This document shows, in pieces, positions 1 to 9,640 of a stretch of 64,000 nt of DNA (position 1 is its first letter; each line of letters begins with the position of its first letter). The notes under the pieces were generated by a model. The model was given only the letters and a program-made list of their open reading frames with translations. It ran no database searches and had not been told where the DNA came from. A program made the position numbers and the translations under genes. This DNA comes from Anaeramoeba ignava BMAN (Eukaryota > Protista > Anaeramoebae). The stretch is from NCBI GenBank assembly GCA_028826165.1, contig JAPDFW010000022.1:372001-436000 (forward strand). The letters run 5' to 3'.

Positions 1-3000
1 AATTTATTATTTTCAATAAATTGATTATTTTCATTATTTTCAATAAATTGATTATTTTTATTATTTTGATTATTTTGATTATTTTCAATAAATTGATTAT
101 TTTGATTATTTTCATTATTTTGATTAAATTGATTATTTTGATTATTTTTATTATTTTGATTAAATCTTAATTGAAGTCGAGAAATTAGATTTAAAGGAAT
201 TTTTAAATTTGTTTCTAATTTTTGATTATTTTGATTATTATTTTGATTATTATTTTGATTATTATTAAATTGAATATTTTTGAATTGATAATTTTGCTTT
301 TCTTTAAATTTATTATTTTGGTTTAATTTTAAAGGAAATCGAGAAAGTAAATTTAAAGGTATTTTTAAATTTTTTTGTAATTTTGGGTTATTATTATTTT
401 GATGATTATTTTGAATATTATTTTGAATATTATTTTGAATATTATTTTGATTATTATTTTGGTTATTATTTTTATTTTGATTATTATTTTGAATATTATT
501 TTGAATATTATTTTGAATATTATTATTTTGATTATTTTGAATATTATTTTGATTATTATTTTGATTATTTTGATTATTATTTTGATTATTATTTTGATTA
601 TTATTATTTTGGTTATTATTTTTATTTTGATTATTATTTTGAATATTATTTTTGATTATTTTGAATATTGATTTTGATTATTATTTTGGTTATTATTTTG
701 ATTATTTTGAATATTATTTTGAATATTATTTTGAATATTATTTTGAATATTATTTTGAATATTATTATTTTGATTATTTTGAATATTATTTTGAATATTA
801 TTTTGAATATTATTTTGAATATTATTTTGATTATTATTTTGATTATTATTTTTTTGGTTATTTTTTTGATTTAATTTTAAAGAAGATTGAGAAAGTAAAT
901 TTAAAGGTAATTTTGTATTATTTTGATTATTGTTATCATCTCTGTTAAATTGAATATTTTTAAATTGGCTATATTGATTAAATTGAATAGTTTTAACTGG
1001 AATAGATTGGTTGGATTGAGTATTTTGGAATTGATTGAATTGATTGAATTGATTAAATTGAATAGTTTTAACTGGAATAGATTTATTTTCATTATTTTCA
1101 TTATTTTGATTATTTTGATTTAATTTTAATGGAGATTTAGAAATGAAATTTAAAGATATTTTTGGATTTGTTTGTAATTTTTGGTTATTTTGATTATTAA
1201 ATTTTTTTTGTTTTATTTTGAATATCTCTAAATTCATTATTTTTGTCAAGATTTCGGTTTGTTTTATAAATATTTGGATCAAAAGTAAATAACTTAAAAT
1301 CATATTGATCAACAAAATTGATATCTTTTTTTCCATTTATATCATTTTGTAAATTATTTTTAAATCATTTTTAAATCATTTTGTAAATCATTTTTTAAAT
1401 CATTTTGTAAATTATTTTGTAAATTATTTTGTAAATCATTTTGTAAATCATTTTGTAAATTATTTTGTAAATCATTTTGTAAATCATTTTGTAAATTATT
1501 TTGTAAATTATTTTGTAAATCATTTTGTAAATTGTTTTGTAAATTATTTTTTAAATTATTTTGTAAATTGTTTTGTAAATCATTTTTTAAATTATTTTGT
1601 AAATTGTTTTGTAAATTGTTTTGTAAATCATTTTGTAAATCATTTTGTAAATTATTTTTTAAATTATTTTGTAAATCATTTTGTAAATCATTTTGTAAAT
1701 TATTTTGTAAATTATTTTGTAAATTATTTTGTAAATTATTTTTTAAATTATTTTTTAAATCAGTTTGTAAATTGTTTTTTAAATTATTTTGTAAATTGTT
1801 TTGTAAATTATTTTGTAAATTATTTTGTAAATTGTTTTGTAAATTATTTTGTAAATTATTTTGTAAATTATTTTGTAAATCATTTTGTAAATTATTTTGT
1901 AAATTATTTTGTAAATCATTTTGTAAATTATTTTGTATATTATTTTTTAAATCATTTTTTAAATCATTTTTTAAATTATTTTGTAAATTATTTTGTAAAT
2001 TGTTTTGTAAATCATTTTGTAAATCATTTTGTAAATCATTTTGTAAATTATTTTGTAAATTATTTTGTAAATTATTTTGTAAATTATTTTGTAAATTGTT
2101 TTGTAAATCATTTTGTAAATTGTTTTGTAAATTATTTTTTAAATCATTTTGTAAATTGTTTTGTAAATTGTTTTGTAAATTATTTTGTAAATTATTTTGT
2201 AAATTATTTTGTAAATCATTTTGTAAATTGTTTTGTAAATTATTTTGTAAATTATTTTGTAAATTATTTTGTAAATTATTTTTTAAATCAGTTTGTAAAT
2301 TGTTTTGTAAATTATTTTGTAAATCATTTTGTAAATCATTTTGTAAATTATTTTTTAAATTATTTTTTAAATCATTTTGTAAATTATTTTGTAAATTATT
2401 TTGTAAATTATTTTGTAAATCATTTTTTAAATCATTTTGTAAATTGTTTTTTAAATTATTTTGTAAATTGTTTTGTAAATCATTTTGTAAATTATTTTGT
2501 AAATCATTTTGTAAATTATTTTTTAAATTATTTTGTAAATTATTTTGTAAATTGTTTTGTAAATCATTTTGTAAATTATTTTGTAAATTGTTTTGTAAAT
2601 TGTTTTGTAAATCATTTTGTAAATCATTTTTTAAATTATTTTGTAAATTGTTTTGTAAATCATTTTGTAAATTATTTTGTAAATTATTTTTTAAATTATT
2701 TTGTAAATTATTTTGTAAATTATTTTGTAAATCATTTTGTAAATCATTTTGTAAATCATTTTGTAAATTATTTTTTAAATTGTTTTGTAAATCATTTTTT
2801 AAATCATTTTTTAAATTATTTTGTAAATCATTTTTTAAATTATTTTGTAAATTGTTTTGTAAATTATTTTGTAAATTATTTTTTAAATCATTTTGTAAAT
2901 TGTTTTGTAAATCATTTTGTAAATTGTTTTGTAAATTGTTTTGTAAATTATTTTTTAAATTATTTTGTAAATTATTTTGTAAATTATTTTTTAAATTATT

Positions 3001-3507
3001 TTGTAAATCATTTTGTAAATCATTTTGTAAATTATTTTGTAAATCATTTTGTAAATTATTTTGTAAATTATTTTGTAAATTATTTTGTAAATCATTTTGT
3101 AAATCATTTTGTAAATTATTTTGTAAATTATTTTGTAAATTATTTTGTAAATTGTTTTGTAAATTGTTTTGTAAATTGGTTTTTTTTTCATTCTCTAAAA
3201 ATAAAAGAGTAGAAAATTCTTTTTCTTGATTAAAATCGTTAAAATCTTCAAAACTTTCATCTTTAAATATTGGAATTTCATTTAAAAATTGTGATTGTTC
3301 AAAATTTATTTCTGAATGATTTTGAGAATTATATTCAGAAAAATAAGGAGATGAATCAAAGTTTTCAAGATTATTTATTTCTTGAATTTTCTTTTCAGAA
3401 TTTTGTAAATTTTTATTTGAAATATTGGTTGTATTTTTCAAATTTGAATGTAAATTATTTTTATTTTCATTTTGATTTTTTGAAAAATTATTATTTTTAA
3501 AATTCAT
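1..3507 (-). CDS. Low-complexity N/Q-rich repeat protein (about 150 x NNLQ/NDLQ/NNLK, then NNIQ tracts and a 4x repeated motif); runs off the left edge; apparent frameshifts near 1365, 1205 and 655
   Basis: ORF 1360..3585 has a unique acidic N-terminus from the ATG at 3507 (MNFKNNNF...ENFDSSPYFSEY). The reading continues in alternating frames (NNLQNDINGKKDINFVDQYDFKLFTFDPNIY..., then the distal part of ORF 656..1336). Confidence 0.55.
1345..3177. repeat. 12-bp coding tandem array (TTGTAAATTATT variants), about 150 units
   Basis: Direct reading; encodes NNLQ/NDLQ/NNLK on the minus strand. Confidence 0.95.
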
Positions 3508-3547
3508 TTTGAAAAAAATGAAAAATAATTTTTTAAATTTTAATTTT

Positions 3548-3594
3548 TTAATTTTCATTTTTTTCATTTTTTTCATTTTTTTCATTTTTTTTTA
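3548..3594 (+). promoter_or_regulatory. Tandem TTTTTTCATTT initiator-like elements upstream of XPO1, in an 87-bp divergent spacer
   Basis: Four copies of T-run/TCA/T-run end just before ATG 3595; the same motif precedes most genes in the window. Confidence 0.5.
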
Positions 3595-6500
3595 ATGGAA
3601 AAAGAATTATTAGATTTTACACAAGAAACATTTAATGTTGATGTATTTGATCAAGTAGTGCAAAAATTTTATTATGGAAATGATGAAGAAGTAAAAAAAT
3701 AAAAAAAAAATTTTTAATATAAAAATTTAATTTATAAAATCAAAAAAAAAAAATATTTATATTTCAATTTAAAGAGAGAAATTGCACAAACAATATTAAC
3801 ACAATTTCAAGAACATCCTGAATCATGGAGAAGAGTTGATGTGATAATTGAATTTAGTCAAAATAATAACTCAAAATTTTTAGCTTTACAAATTCTTGAA
3901 AGAACTATTAAATATCGATGGAAATCTCTTCCTCAAGAACAACAAAATGGAATTAGAGATTATATTTTAAGAACTATCTTTACTTTATCTGAAGATCCAC
4001 AAATTTTTTATTCAAATAAAATTGTTGTTTCAAAACTTAATCAAAATTTAATTGAGGTCAAAATCTAAATCTAAATCTAAATCTAAATCTAAATCTAAAT
4101 ATAAATATAAATATAAATATAAATATTAATATAAATATAAATATAAATATAAATATAAATATAAATATAAATATAAATATAAATATAAATATAAATATAA
4201 ATATAAATATAAATATAAATATAAATATAAATATAAATATAAATATAAATATAAAATATAAATATAAATATAAATATAAATAAAAATAAAAATAAATATA
4301 AATATAAAATATAAATGCGTTCAAATATAAATATAAATATAAATATAAAAATATAAAATATAAATATAAAAATATAAATATAAAATAAAATATAAAATAT
4401 AAATATAAAATAAATATAAAATATAAATATAAATATAAATAAATATAAATATAAATATAAATATAAATATAAATATAAATATAAATATAAATATAAATAT
4501 AAATATAAATATAAATATAAATATAAATATAAATATAAATATAAATATAAATATAAATATAAATATAAATATAAATATAAATATAAATATAAATATCAAA
4601 ATCTAATTCAAATTCAATTTTTTAGATTGTTAAACAAGATTGGCCAAAAAATTGGTCAACATTTGTTCAAGATATGATTAAAGCTGGTCAAAATAGTCTT
4701 TCAAGTTGTGAAAATGTTATGTCAATATTTAAATTATTAAGTCAAGAAGTTTTTGATTTCCATCAAGATCAACTTACTACATCAAAAACAACAGAACTTA
4801 AAAATACTTTCCATGATGAAATTTCTAATATTTTTGAATTTTGTCAATATGTCCTTGAAGGAGGTGATGACAATTCATTATTAAATGTACTTTAAAAACA
4901 ATATCCAATAAAATTAAAATTAAAATTAAAATTAAAATTAAAATTCATTTATAAAATTAAAATTAATATTAAAATTCATTTATAAAATTAAAATTAATAT
5001 TAAAAGGCAACTCTTAGTACTTTTTTATCACTTTTAAATTGGATTCCTTTAGGATATGTTTTTCAAACCAAAATTATCACAATTTTAACAACTAAAGTAA
5101 ATTAAAATTAATTTAGAATCATTTCAAAAAAAAATTAATTTAAATTCATTTCAAAAAAAAAAATTAATTTAAATCATTTCAAAAAAAAAAATTAATTTAA
5201 ATCATTTCAAAAAAAATTTTTTTTAAAAAAGTTATTATCAAATCCAGAAACTTTGGATTTAACTCTTCAATGTTTAACTGAGATTTGTACTCTTAAAACT
5301 GAAGTTTCTTTTGATGAAGAATTTATTAATTTATACGTTTCATCAATGAAATCATTATCTCAACATATTCAATCAACTTCTAAATTTATTGAAATTTATG
5401 AAGATGGAACAGAAAAAGATCGATCTGTTTTAAAAAGTCTTTCAAATTTTCTTGCAAATTTTTTGAAAAACCACATTAAAAAATTAGAAAAAGTAAAACA
5501 AGTTACCAAAAAGGAAATTTATGAATCTTTATACATTTTAATTGGACTTTCAGAAATATATGATATGGATCTATTTCAAAATTGTTTGGATTATTGGAAT
5601 TCTTTTGCAAGTGATTTATTTCACGAGACTCTATCACTTCCTTTTTCAAGAACAGCCATTTTAGTCACAATATCAAATGTTTCGTATTTAACATATCCAA
5701 TGAATTATCCAACAAAAGAAAAACCAAAAAGAGTTATTTTTTATCAACCAATTATCTCAAAATTACGGCATGTTTTAATTTCCAAAATGGTAAAACCCGA
5801 GGAAGTTTTGATTGTTGAAGATGATAATGGAGAATTAATTAGAGAATACACAAAAGATACAGATGCCATTGAATTATACAAATCAATGAGACAAACATTA
5901 GTTCTCTTAACACATTTGAATTACAAAGAAACTCAATCTGTTTTATATGAAAAACTCAAAAGCATAAATCCTTATAATTTCTCATGGGGTGATCTTAATA
6001 CAATTTGTTGGGCAATCGGCTCCATTTCGGGTGCTTTAACAATCGAAATGGAAAAGGAATTCTTAATCAATGTGATTCATGTTTTGTTGGAATTTTGCGC
6101 AAAAACAGAAGGAAAAGATAATAAAGCTGTGGCAACAAGCAATATAATGTATATTGTTGGTCAATATCCAAGATTTTTACGAACAAATTGGCATTTCTTA
6201 CAAACTGTTGTCGCAAAATTGTTTGAATTTATGCATGAACCTCATCCAGGAATCAAAGATATGTCTTTGCATCATGACCAGAAAGTTATCATAAGAATTA
6301 ATAATTCTCATATTGTTGTTGATTCTATTGGAAATATTATTGATAAATTAATGAATCAAAACGAAAATATTCAAAAATTTGGAGATTCTTCGGTTCTTTT
6401 CCCAAATCAAAAATTCCAAATTTTAACTGTTAGTCAAAATGAAAAGGTGGATTGGAAACCTATTACAACCTTTTCTCGCCATAAAACTTCTCAAAAATTA

Positions 6501-9500
6501 ATAAAAGTTTCAACAAAAACAAGAAGATCAACAATTGCTACAAAAAATCACTCTTTTTTACTTCGCGATAAATCTTCTTTGAAACCAATTTTAGGAAGCA
6601 ATTTAAAAGTAAATATTGATAGAATTCCTCTTTTGAAAAAATTAATGATTCCTAATTCTCATTTGATAAAACATATCGATCTTAATACAAATACTAATAC
6701 TAATACAAATACAAATACAAATATTATTGAACTTGATTTTCCTCTTGGGTTTTTATTTGGAGCTCATTTTAATATTGGAATAATTGAAGAAAATAAAAAT
6801 TCCTTAATTTATCAATCTCAACAAAACCCAAATTTACTTAAATATTTACAATTACTAATTCAACTCAAATTTAATATTCCAAATTTATCAACAAATAACT
6901 CTTCAACTTCACTGAAAATATTATTCAAACCTTTGATCAATTTTATTGATCATTTCTCCTCTAAATTTTTCAATTCAATTGACGAGAATAATATTATAAA
7001 TCAGAAAGTAAAATATCCATCATCTTTATTCTCTTTACTGTTATTTTCTCCTTTGAACTTTTTATCAGGGTTTTTCAGTGGATTTTATCATTCAAATCAA
7101 AACCAAAAATTTGAAATTGAAAGAAATGAAATTGAAAATGAATCTTTTGATTTTTCTGAAATGCTTCAAATCGTTCTCACTCGTTTTAATATTTTATCTC
7201 AAATTGAAACAAATTCTCAATTTTCACACAAAAATTATTTTGTTTTGAAAATGATTGGAAAAAATTCAATAAGATTTTTGGAAATGATCAAATTAAATCA
7301 TTTTGTAGATAATGATTTTGAATATACAAATTATATAAATGATTTGATTGATTCCAAAATAGAAGCAATTTCTAAACAAAACTTACAAAAAGAAATTGAA
7401 ATTTACAATCAAATACCATTCAATAATGAATCAGAAATTGCACCTTCATTTTATCTCAAATCAAATAAAAAAGAAACCAATTCTTTTGGTTCCTCATTAG
7501 AATCAATCCATTCAACAAATGAAATAAAATCTAAATTGATTGAAATGGAAAAAGAATTGGAACAAATTTCACAAGTATCAAAAAATATTTCGAATCGTTT
7601 AGAAAATATAAAGAAAAATGAAGATGCAATTAAAAACAAAAATAAAAACAAAAATTGGGAAATTGATGAAATTGAAAAAGAATGCAAACAAACGGAAGAA
7701 TATTTGATTGAAAAAATCAGAGAATTGAAGCAAGCATTAAAGGCAGATGTTTTTTATGATCTGATAACAGATATACAAGAAGTATCACTTGGAGATGGAG
7801 AATATGTTTATGATTTTAGTGTAGAAAGCAACGAAACATTCATGTTATTTAATACAATATTTGTTCACAATTCTTGTGATACTTTTTTAAAAATTGCAAC
7901 AAAATGCAAAAAACAATTTGCACTCAAACAAGATCCAGATTCTGTTCCATATATTTTTGAAATCATATCACAACTCAATTCAATAACATCGGATCTTGAG
8001 AATCAACAAGTTCTTATATTTTATGAAGCATTAGGAATAATTATTTCTGCTACAAAAGTAAAAGATCGAGAAAAACTTGTTGAAAAATTAATGAATCATC
8101 ACAATACTTCTTGGTCACAATTACTTTCATTATCAAAAAGTGATGAAAACTCGCTGAACAACATTCAGATATGCAAAGATTTGGTTTACATTTTGAGAGC
8201 TAATGTGCGAATTGCATCCACAGTTGCAGATTTTTTTATCCAACAGTTCAATTTCATTTATGAAGACGCATTGTTTCTTTATAAAACGTTTTCTGTTTTG
8301 ATCAAGAAAATAATATCATCAGAAGGAACTCAAATTGTGAAAAGTAGCCAAATAAGAAACATGAAGGCTGTTAAAAAAGAAATTATCATTTTGATTCAAA
8401 CTTTTTTCCAAAAATATAAAGATCCTCAACCTTTAATGGAAGAATATTTTCCTCAATTATTTGAAGTTATTTTTGATGATTATAAGAACAATTTTCCTGA
8501 AGCAAGAATTCCAGAGGTTTTATATTTTTTGTCTATTGTTGTTTTGAAACTCCAAACTCAAATATCAAGTTATATTCCTTCCATTTTTGAATCAACATTT
8601 GAATGCACATTAGAAATGATTTCATCAAATTTTGAAGATTTTCCTGATTTTAGATTTAATTTTTATAAGTTACTTGAATCAATTAATAAGTTTTCTTTTG
8701 ATTCTTTATTCATGTTGACTTCACAAAATTTTAAGGTTATTGTTGATAGTATTATTTGGGCTTTTAAACATACAGAAAGAAATATATCCGAAACTGGATT
8801 ATCTATTTTATTAGATTTATTTCGTAATGTTTTATTACGTGATGAAATTTTGAATGATTTTTTCCAAACATTTTATCTATCACTTCTTCAAGAAATATTT
8901 ATTATTTTAACCGATAGTTTTCATAAAACAGGTAAATAATTTTAATTTTAATTTTTATCCGATTTTTAATAATAATTTTAATTTTTAATTTTAATTTTAA
9001 TTTTAATTTTAATTTTTTAAATGAATTTTAATTTTAATTTTAATTTTTTATCCGATTTTTAATTTTAATTTTAATTTTAAATTTAATTTTAATTTTTTAA
9101 TTTTAATTTTAATAATTTTAATTTTAATTTTAATTTTAATTTTAATTTTAATTTTAATTTTAATTTTAATTTTAAATAGGATTTTAAATTTTAATTTAGC
9201 ACAATTTTTTTCAATCAATGATCAAATTTTGAATTTTAATTTTAATTTTAATTTTATTTGATATTTTAATTTTAATTTTAAAATCAATTTTAATTTTAAT
9301 TTTATTAGAAATGATTTCAACAATGTTTCCAAATTTAAATCAATCACAAATAGAAATTTTTATAACTGGAATGTTTGAGTTTCATAAAGATTTACAAAAC
9401 TTTAAAAATCATTTAAGAGATTTTTTAATTCAAACAAAAGAATTTACAGGTCAAGATAATACTGATTTATTTGAAGAAGAAAAACAACTTCAAAAACAAC

Positions 9501-9640
9501 AAGATTTCGAAAGAAGAAAACAAATTCCTGGTTTAATTAATCCTTATGAACAAAATGATGATGAAGATAATGAAGATGATATGAATAATGATAATATTAT
9601 TACTAATCAAGATGATTCATTTAATATGAATCAAAATTGA
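3595..9640 (+). CDS. XPO1: Exportin-1 (CRM1), intein-containing. Exons 3595-3690, 3775-4056, 4626-4886, 5007-5096, 5232-8931, an unresolved segment near 9180-9230, and 9309-9640
   Basis: Spliced translation gives CRM1 hallmarks: [47 protein letters not shown] (acidic loop), [99 protein letters not shown]. The resolved introns are GT-AG and frame-preserving. Confidence 0.97.
4064..4596. repeat. (ATCTAA)n/(ATATAA)n hexamer array in XPO1 intron 2
   Basis: Direct reading; intron 4057-4625 is GT..AG. Confidence 0.9.
6264..7871 (+). mobile_element. Intein (536 aa) with degenerate LAGLIDADG homing-endonuclease region, inside exportin-1
   Basis: Interrupts the conserved CRM1 motif DM(A)CDTF as DM|[10 protein letters not shown]...IFVHN|SCDTF. 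Block A starts with Ser; block [11 protein letters not shown] (TxxH); block [14 protein letters not shown]; block G VHN followed by +1 Ser. Decayed endonuclease motifs: [35 protein letters not shown]. Confidence 0.96.

Follow-up and report, generated by a model that had tools for sequence, protein, structure and literature searches.

The inteins of eukaryotic VMA1 (PI-SceI) and Prp8 reside in nuclear genes, interrupt essential and conserved sites of their hosts, use class-1 splicing chemistry and carry a LAGLIDADG-type domain. Inteins are far from confined to these hosts in the protist Anaeramoeba ignava BMAN, for which a recent survey lists 103 inteins in 79 exteins, distributed over 49 eukaryotic orthologous groups (KOGs), 18 of them novel as hosts, with the largest intein comprising 550 amino acids (Gallot-Lavallee et al. 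2023, PNAS, PMC10710043). Splicing of three other Anaeramoeba inteins is shown in the same paper. Here we analyze an intein in the nuclear export receptor exportin-1/CRM1 of A. ignava. It is encoded in a 64,000-nucleotide stretch of genomic DNA, referred to below as the window (GenBank assembly GCA_028826165.1, contig JAPDFW010000022.1, positions 372,001 to 436,000, forward strand). Within the 42.8-Mb assembly of 147 contigs, we label the contig containing the window C13 (C13:372001-436000), and the exportin-1 locus in the window is called by the same name.

The closest described systems are two paralogues from the same genome. The proteins encoded at the C72 and C93 loci (P0001, 1463 amino acids, and P0045, 1609 amino acids, respectively) are titled "intein-containing exportin-1 precursor [Anaeramoeba ignava]" at NCBI. 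They share the species, host protein and insertion site with C13, which represents a third locus and for whose own protein no public name turned up. A preliminary description of the window, made from the sequence alone, had suspected that the allele might already be catalogued, and the two titles bear this out. Thus, the intein in A. ignava exportin-1 is real but not new, being already present in public annotation. The main text of PMC10710043 contains no mention of exportin, CRM1, XPO1, importin or karyopherin, and a literature search for intein and exportin found no paper on a natural exportin intein, only engineering or unrelated work. What the present analysis adds is that all canonical CRM1 copies are occupied, that their inteins most simply trace back to a single invasion younger than the divergence of A. 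ignava from A. flamelloides and followed by co-duplication, and that the very probably dead endonuclease is accompanied by constrained splicing lobes.

A class-1-type intein in exportin-1

The insert measures 1608 nt (6264-7871, forward strand), that is, 536 codons without a stop, and lies in frame within an open reading frame covering positions 5253-8939. Given the base composition of the insert itself (G+C content 0.238), 536 stop-free codons would be expected by chance with a probability of ~7e-23; the remaining five frames contain 31-61 stops apiece. In the translation, the N-terminal junction reads GIKDM/SLHHDQ and the C-terminal junction TIFVHN/SCDTFLK, where slashes mark the borders between intein and exteins. 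The interruption is exact, with the exteins abutting without a residue lost or gained relative to intein-free homologues. The presence of the intein insert in the C13 exportin-1 gene is therefore confirmed to the base.

The flanking sequences identify the host as exportin-1/CRM1. The two exteins were searched separately rather than as a joined sequence. The left flank matches the Pfam families CRM1_repeat, CRM1_repeat_2 and CRM1_repeat_3, and the right flank matches CRM1_C (2.3e-76), whereas PDB exportin-1 chains match the N-extein at 7e-89 and the C-extein at 2e-83. The domains IBN_N, Xpo1, CRM1 repeats 1-3 and CRM1_C follow each other in the expected order, and the helix KLFEFM of the groove that binds the nuclear export signal (NES) is present.

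Both profile and structural comparisons point to an intein. The insert matches the Pfam families Intein_splicing (PF14890; 1.2e-12, 48.3 bits, cut-off 35.8) over residues 48-536 and LAGLIDADG_3 (PF14528; 23.9 bits, cut-off 22.5) over residues 265-342. In a sequence search of the PDB, both splicing lobes match the archaeal TFIIB mini-intein and PI-PkoII. An alignment of 55 inteins (A1) has invariant columns at T93, H96, D517, H535 and N536, with S1 almost invariant as well. A model that AlphaFold produced from A1 has a mean predicted local distance difference test score (pLDDT) of 81 and a predicted template modeling score (pTM) of 0.82, with the splicing lobes reaching ~90-97. When this model was compared with the PDB using Foldseek, the best matches were TliVMA (6e-17), PI-PkoII (3e-16), PI-PfuI (6e-13) and PI-SceI (9e-6), followed by mini-inteins and the free LAGLIDADG enzyme I-DmoI. 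The insert thus combines an in-frame interruption with Ser1, TxxH of block B, Asp of block F, His-Asn of block G, Ser at the +1 position of the C-extein and the HINT fold. Sequence and model together support its assignment as a genuine class-1-type intein with a LAGLIDADG domain.

Insertion into helix 12B next to the NES groove

In the PDB alignments, the N-extein extends to human M583 and the C-extein takes over at A584 (residue numbers as in chain 3gb8_A, 1071 residues). Counting back, KLFEF corresponds to K568-L569-F570-E571-F572, the segment of helix 12A that lines the NES groove in CRM1 structures; the insertion site lies 11 residues beyond F572. The stretch K-L-F-E-F-M...G-V-Q-D-M-A-x-D-T-F is the longest invariant run in an alignment of 40 CRM1 sequences. 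We also modeled the corresponding segment of the intein-free orthologue from A. flamelloides (pLDDT 89). There, the KLFEFM helix ends at model residue 162, the next helix spans residues 167-188, and the insertion point falls between residues 172 and 173, ~1.5 turns (about 5-6 residues) into helix 12B. Judging from this model, the unspliced precursor would have a broken helix 12B, and its NES groove would presumably be disabled. Among the intein-free CRM1 proteins in the best 120 homologues from each of two extein searches, 215 read DMACDTF at the site, and four from other eukaryotes read DMSCDTF. Since these four naturally carry Ser, the residue appears to be tolerated in the ligated product.

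These results agree with what the preliminary description had reported, namely an in-frame insert of 536 amino acids at 6264-7871 with all the splicing residues listed above, which both the translation and the 55-intein alignment bear out. The check that it had proposed, with Hint/intein and LAGLIDADG profiles, gave PF14890 and PF14528 above their cut-offs. The host and the site that it had given, human M583/A584, proved correct as well, the PDB alignments ending and starting exactly there, and the location just after the helix containing K568, E571 and F572 can now be refined to a position within helix 12B.

All canonical CRM1 copies of A. ignava carry the intein

Searches of the whole genome with CRM1_C and the N-extein revealed five CRM1 loci, C13, C72, C93, C12 and C129. 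In the first four, an intein occupies precisely the same position between identical flanking residues (KDM/S...HN/SCDTF), and all splicing residues, including Ser at +1, are intact in each of them. The intein of C72 is the closest paralogue of that in C13 (83-87% identity), and those of C93 and C12 are 32-35% identical to it. The C93 and C12 exportin loci share 97.5% DNA identity over ~5 kb, with an indel of 6 residues in a LELE repeat distinguishing their inteins, and C12 is a contig of 87 kb. The pair could have arisen by recent segmental duplication, or it could reflect a haplotype left uncollapsed.

The fifth locus is a CRM1-like gene (C129:44000-53999, 6374-8749) which lacks an intein. 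It matches CRM1_C with 215 bits, and its exteins are 24-29% identical. The site in this gene reads KIFQFMGKSHHELSQI-SCQAF (SQI-SCQAF), with Ser where other CRM1 proteins have Ala584. This Ser may have been left behind when an intein was lost precisely, or it may have arisen independently. The long branch of C129 makes its phylogenetic placement unreliable. The A. ignava genome has no canonical CRM1 gene free of the intein, and functional CRM1 therefore presumably depends on splicing. From this distribution of the intein among the copies, the same probably applies to CRM1-dependent export.

A probable single invasion followed by gene duplications

The four CRM1 inteins form one clade (Shimodaira-Hasegawa-like approximate likelihood ratio test, SH-aLRT, 97) with the topology ((C13,C72),(C93,C12)). 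The same topology was recovered in the host tree, which was built from the C-extein alone and in which the four hosts are also united in one clade (96/96); support for the shared topology is 96-100 across the intein and extein trees. Exportin-1 of A. flamelloides (P0313, 1055 amino acids) has no intein and reads DMACDTF, with Ala at the +1 position. Eight insertion sites are common to A. ignava and A. flamelloides, none of them in CRM1, according to PMC10710043. Given the congruent intein and extein topologies and the intein-free A. flamelloides protein, the sequences are most simply read as the result of one invasion, which took place in the A. ignava lineage once it had separated from A. flamelloides; later duplications of the gene would then have multiplied the intein together with its host. 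Outside A. ignava, no CRM1 inteins were found among the best 120 homologues in each of the two extein searches or among the 150 best of 572 intein matches. A EukProt model (P0189, 1431 amino acids) considered as a further CRM1 intein was rejected, as it contains an internal duplication with an intact DMACDTF.

The divergence between C13 and C72 is a mosaic (5253-8936 compared with C72:313000-322999, 5345-8977). The synonymous divergence (dS) amounts to 0.77 for the N-extein part, compared with 0.24 for the intein and 0.31 for the C-extein; the change to low divergence is located upstream of the insertion point, at a distance of ~30-50 codons. Over its final ~100 codons, the long exon hardly differs between the two copies (synonymous difference 0.02-0.04). 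This pattern looks like gene-conversion tracts between the paralogues.

Relatives of the CRM1 intein

An exhaustive HMMER search against 1.84 billion representatives yielded 572 matches at E<=0.001. Both junctions could be placed in 168 of the 188 relatives that were retrieved, and besides the two CRM1 paralogues nearly all of these are inteins of RNA polymerase largest subunits. The hosts include archaeal RpoA'', eukaryotic RPB1-type and Nucleocytoviricota/giant-virus-like polymerases, in which the intein occupies the trigger-loop site GEPxTQM/TLNTFH. These trigger-loop inteins are the closest relatives outside CRM1 and align with the CRM1 intein over its full length, that is, over both splicing lobes and the LAGLIDADG domain. 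Related inteins in A. ignava itself are found in two RNA polymerase genes (C1, C76) and two MCM genes (C85, C106). In the intein tree, MCM inteins of A. ignava form the sister group of the CRM1 clade (SH-aLRT 96), but long-branch and deviant-composition warnings apply to exactly these rows, and for this reason we name no donor. The MCM inteins (C85:187168-190590; C106:80089-84108) are inserted in the Walker-A region, with the junctions TGKGS/S...HN/SGVGLTA and SGRSS/S...HN/SAAG.

The CRM1 site (EPHPGIKDM/SCDTF) faintly resembles the RNA polymerase site (GEPGTQM/TLKTF), the two sharing M/[S/T]-x-x-T-F. This likeness might reflect either microhomology-guided ectopic homing from the RNA polymerase site or chance. 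Two observations weigh against the former idea: only 16 of 60 bases match between the DNA flanking the CRM1 insertion (6234-6263 and 7872-7901) and that of the RNA polymerase sites in C76 and C1, and in the tree the MCM inteins are nearer to the CRM1 inteins than are those of RNA polymerases.

The A. ignava RNA polymerase largest-subunit gene on C1 (C1:471500-481400, minus strand) contains two trigger-loop inteins separated by only three residues, one reading GEPSTQM/S...VHN/TLN and the other TLN/SVDWQ...INLYD/TFHLAG. The latter terminates in Tyr-Asp rather than His-Asn, and the TLN-S pattern is common to many metagenomic RNA polymerases.

Decay of the endonuclease and constraint on the splicing lobes

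Active LAGLIDADG endonucleases have two helices, each ending in a catalytic Asp or Glu. In the alignment with RNA polymerase inteins, motif 1 of the C13 intein reads FNIG, where relatives have LAEG or LADG, and motif 2 reads FSGFY, compared with FDGDG in relatives, so that the catalytic Asp is gone. Across the four CRM1 inteins, the acid of motif 1 is replaced by Ile in C13 and C72 and by Ser in C93 and C12 (FNIG or ISSG), and motif 2 appears as FSGFY or YFY-Q. The catalytic acids and a conserved SRxYGRW region are both preserved in RNA polymerase inteins and have both been lost from those of CRM1. The fold is retained, as indicated by the PF14528 and I-DmoI matches. Because both catalytic acids are replaced in all four copies, the endonuclease is very probably dead and the intein immobile.

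The opposite picture emerges for the splicing lobes. Ratios of nonsynonymous to synonymous divergence (dN/dS) between the C13 and C72 copies, obtained as Nei-Gojobori estimates, are 0.13 in the N-terminal splicing lobe and 0.06 in the C-terminal one, compared with 0.36 in the endonuclease plus linker and 0.24-0.33 in the exteins. The splicing lobes are thus more constrained than the host protein and are under strong purifying selection, a pattern to be expected if the production of CRM1 requires splicing.

Organization of the exportin-1 gene

The coordinates of the gene and of the intein parts are collected in Table 1. Residues 1-127 of the paralogous proteins P0001 and P0045 align to the first exons in tblastn, and the exon/intron pattern was derived from three-frame translation. 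Directly upstream of the exportin gene and divergent from it, the minus strand (1360-3585) contains an open frame of 741 residues, which is built up of repeated NLQN/DLQN/NLKN tetrapeptides over almost its whole length (12-nt tandem repeats in the DNA). The complementary strand forms an open frame there as well, as expected for such a repeat.

Table 1. Features of the exportin-1 gene and its intein, in window coordinates; residues are those of the intein unless stated otherwise.
Feature	Position	Strand	Evidence
First exons (N-terminus, importin-beta N-terminal region); ATG at 3595, short intron ~3691-3783	3595..4059	+	tblastn
Large spliceosomal intron; AT dinucleotide and related microsatellites, G+C ~2% (~2-4% over 4058-4600), many stops	4060..4592	.	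translation, composition
Middle exons (Xpo1 domain region) with two further short AT-rich introns, boundaries approximate	4593..5252	+	tblastn
N-extein part of the long exon, CRM1 repeats 1-3, human residues 263-583	5253..6263	+	PF18777, PF18784, PF18787; PDB
Intein, 536 residues	6264..7871	+	Pfam, PDB sequence matches, AlphaFold, Foldseek
N-terminal splicing lobe, residues ~1-140			
Degenerate LAGLIDADG domain, residues ~150-385, followed by a low-confidence linker			
Long helical hairpin, residues 417-493			
C-terminal splicing lobe, residues 496-536			
Block A nucleophile Ser1	6264..6266	+	translation, A1
Block B T93-K-N-H96 (TxxH)	6540..6551	+	A1
LAGLIDADG motif 1, residues 161-173	6744..6782	+	alignment with RNA polymerase inteins
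LAGLIDADG motif 2, residues 266-275	7059..7088	+	alignment; PF14528 covers 265-342
Block F Asp517 (in VYDF)	7812..7814	+	invariant in A1
Block G His535-Asn536 and +1 Ser of the C-extein	7866..7874	+	translation, A1
C-extein part of the long exon, SCDTFLK through CRM1_C, human residues 584-938; then GTAAAT 5' splice site	7872..8931	+	
Last exon (C-terminal helix, acidic tail)	9317..9640	+	P0045 residues 1516-1594 (tblastn), open reading frame 9311-9640, CRM1_C profile positions 270-322

Discussion

We consider it highly probable that the insert is a bona fide class-1-type intein which excises itself from the exportin-1 precursor, and that it represents a fixed selfish element with a decayed endonuclease, co-duplicated into four copies after a single invasion that postdates the split from A. 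flamelloides. The intein would be translated as part of the precursor and would leave it in four steps: an N-O acyl shift at Ser1, trans-esterification to the +1 Ser, cyclization of Asn536 and an O-N shift. Ligation of GIKDM to SCDTFLK would complete helix 12B of HEAT repeat 12, adjoining the NES groove; the unspliced precursor is presumably inactive. In evolutionary terms, the intein would have entered the ancestral A. ignava CRM1 and been copied with the gene into the four paralogues, and its LAGLIDADG endonuclease would then have decayed, leaving an immobile element. Such an intein would persist because imprecise loss at the invariant site would destroy CRM1. Several points temper this view. 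Retention of the insert in the mRNA is predicted from the DNA sequence, and splicing of the C13 intein itself from its residues. Inteins with Ser at both nucleophile positions are rarer than those using Cys and can splice more slowly, although this is compatible with splicing. Furthermore, the 3' part of the gene model consists of the exons 7872..8931 and 9317..9640, and a small exon within 8932-9316 could have been missed.

Since the gene contains at least five spliceosomal introns, one might suppose that the insert is a further intron, exceptionally long and open by coincidence, which is spliced out of the transcript. The introns of this gene are short or microsatellite-like, rich in stops, start with GT and have a G+C content of 0.02-0.06. 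By contrast, the insert has neither GT nor AG at its ends, its G+C content of 0.24 is exon-like, its 536-codon open frame is not expected by chance, the paralogues show purifying selection at the codon level, and the Pfam and structural matches are to inteins. An intron can therefore be practically dismissed. Alternatively, the insert may have ceased to splice, leaving either a pseudogene or a non-canonical exportin in which it forms a permanent domain. The degenerate endonuclease motifs, the low-complexity linker and the coiled-coil-like hairpin added to the intein could be taken as signs of such a fate, and with several paralogues present one could be dispensable. This scenario is nevertheless highly improbable: every splicing residue is intact in four of the four copies, dN/dS is lowest precisely in the splicing lobes and falls below that of the exteins, the exteins themselves are stop-free and under purifying selection, and a 536-residue insert in helix 12B is hard to square with a folded HEAT repeat.

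The preliminary description went further and proposed that CRM1-dependent export requires splicing, which could act as a conditional switch. The former part is partly backed: export probably requires splicing, given that all four canonical copies carry the intein and that the only gene without it is the divergent CRM1-like one. The latter part found no support. A switch on nuclear export through conditional splicing (responding to redox state, temperature, metals or cell state) would be in line with the occupation of every canonical copy, on which export plausibly depends, with the disruption of helix 12B beside the NES groove and with the retention of the intein through two rounds of duplication. 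However, no sequence feature points to regulated splicing. A disulfide trap between Cys1 and Cys+1 is known from some archaeal inteins; it is impossible in the CRM1 intein because both nucleophiles are Ser. Persistence at an invariant site is the standard expectation for a selfish element, and the decayed endonuclease fits passive retention. In addition, ~100 inteins occupy unrelated proteins of this genome, spread over ~49 protein families (PMC10710043), and therefore the presence of one in CRM1 needs no special function. Taken together, a regulatory switch is very unlikely. We would give a marginally better, still poor chance to the more general idea that the rate of splicing could gate nuclear export as a natural checkpoint on a transport receptor and, relatedly, that the block of low divergence between C13 and C72 could record intein-linked rather than ordinary ectopic conversion. 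If correct, this would amount to a protein-splicing checkpoint, in which every canonical A. ignava CRM1 needs splicing to complete helix 12B.

With the insert regarded as a self-excising, selfish intein, the locus cleanly exemplifies an intein that has become "trapped": the element is fixed in each of the canonical genes for a transport receptor that is essential. It illustrates that inteins can colonize any invariant site, beyond enzymes handling nucleic acids or ATP, a point already made for Anaeramoeba as a whole. It also offers a convenient natural substrate for asking whether an unspliced CRM1 precursor is export-inactive.

Comparison with solved and well-studied inteins places the C13 intein among known systems with a few distinctive traits. 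The archaeal inteins TliVMA (7qss), PI-PkoII (2cw7) and PI-PfuI (1dq3) share its two-lobe HINT fold, into which a LAGLIDADG domain is inserted, and sequence similarity in blocks A, B, F and G links it to this group, including the archaeal TFIIB mini-inteins (5o9i, 5o9j). Identity between these archaeal inteins and the C13 intein is just 11-25%. Those that bear an endonuclease are active, whereas the C13 intein has lost both catalytic acids and possesses an extra helical hairpin at residues 417-493. With PI-SceI of VMA1 and the Prp8 inteins it has in common all the features named at the outset, from the nuclear gene to the LAGLIDADG-type domain. PI-SceI is only a weak structural match (Foldseek E 9e-6), and its nucleophiles are Cys1 and Cys+1, compared with Ser1 and Ser+1 in the C13 intein. 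Unlike VMA1 and Prp8, the host of the C13 intein is a non-enzymatic HEAT-repeat transport receptor, which makes it unusual among eukaryotic inteins.

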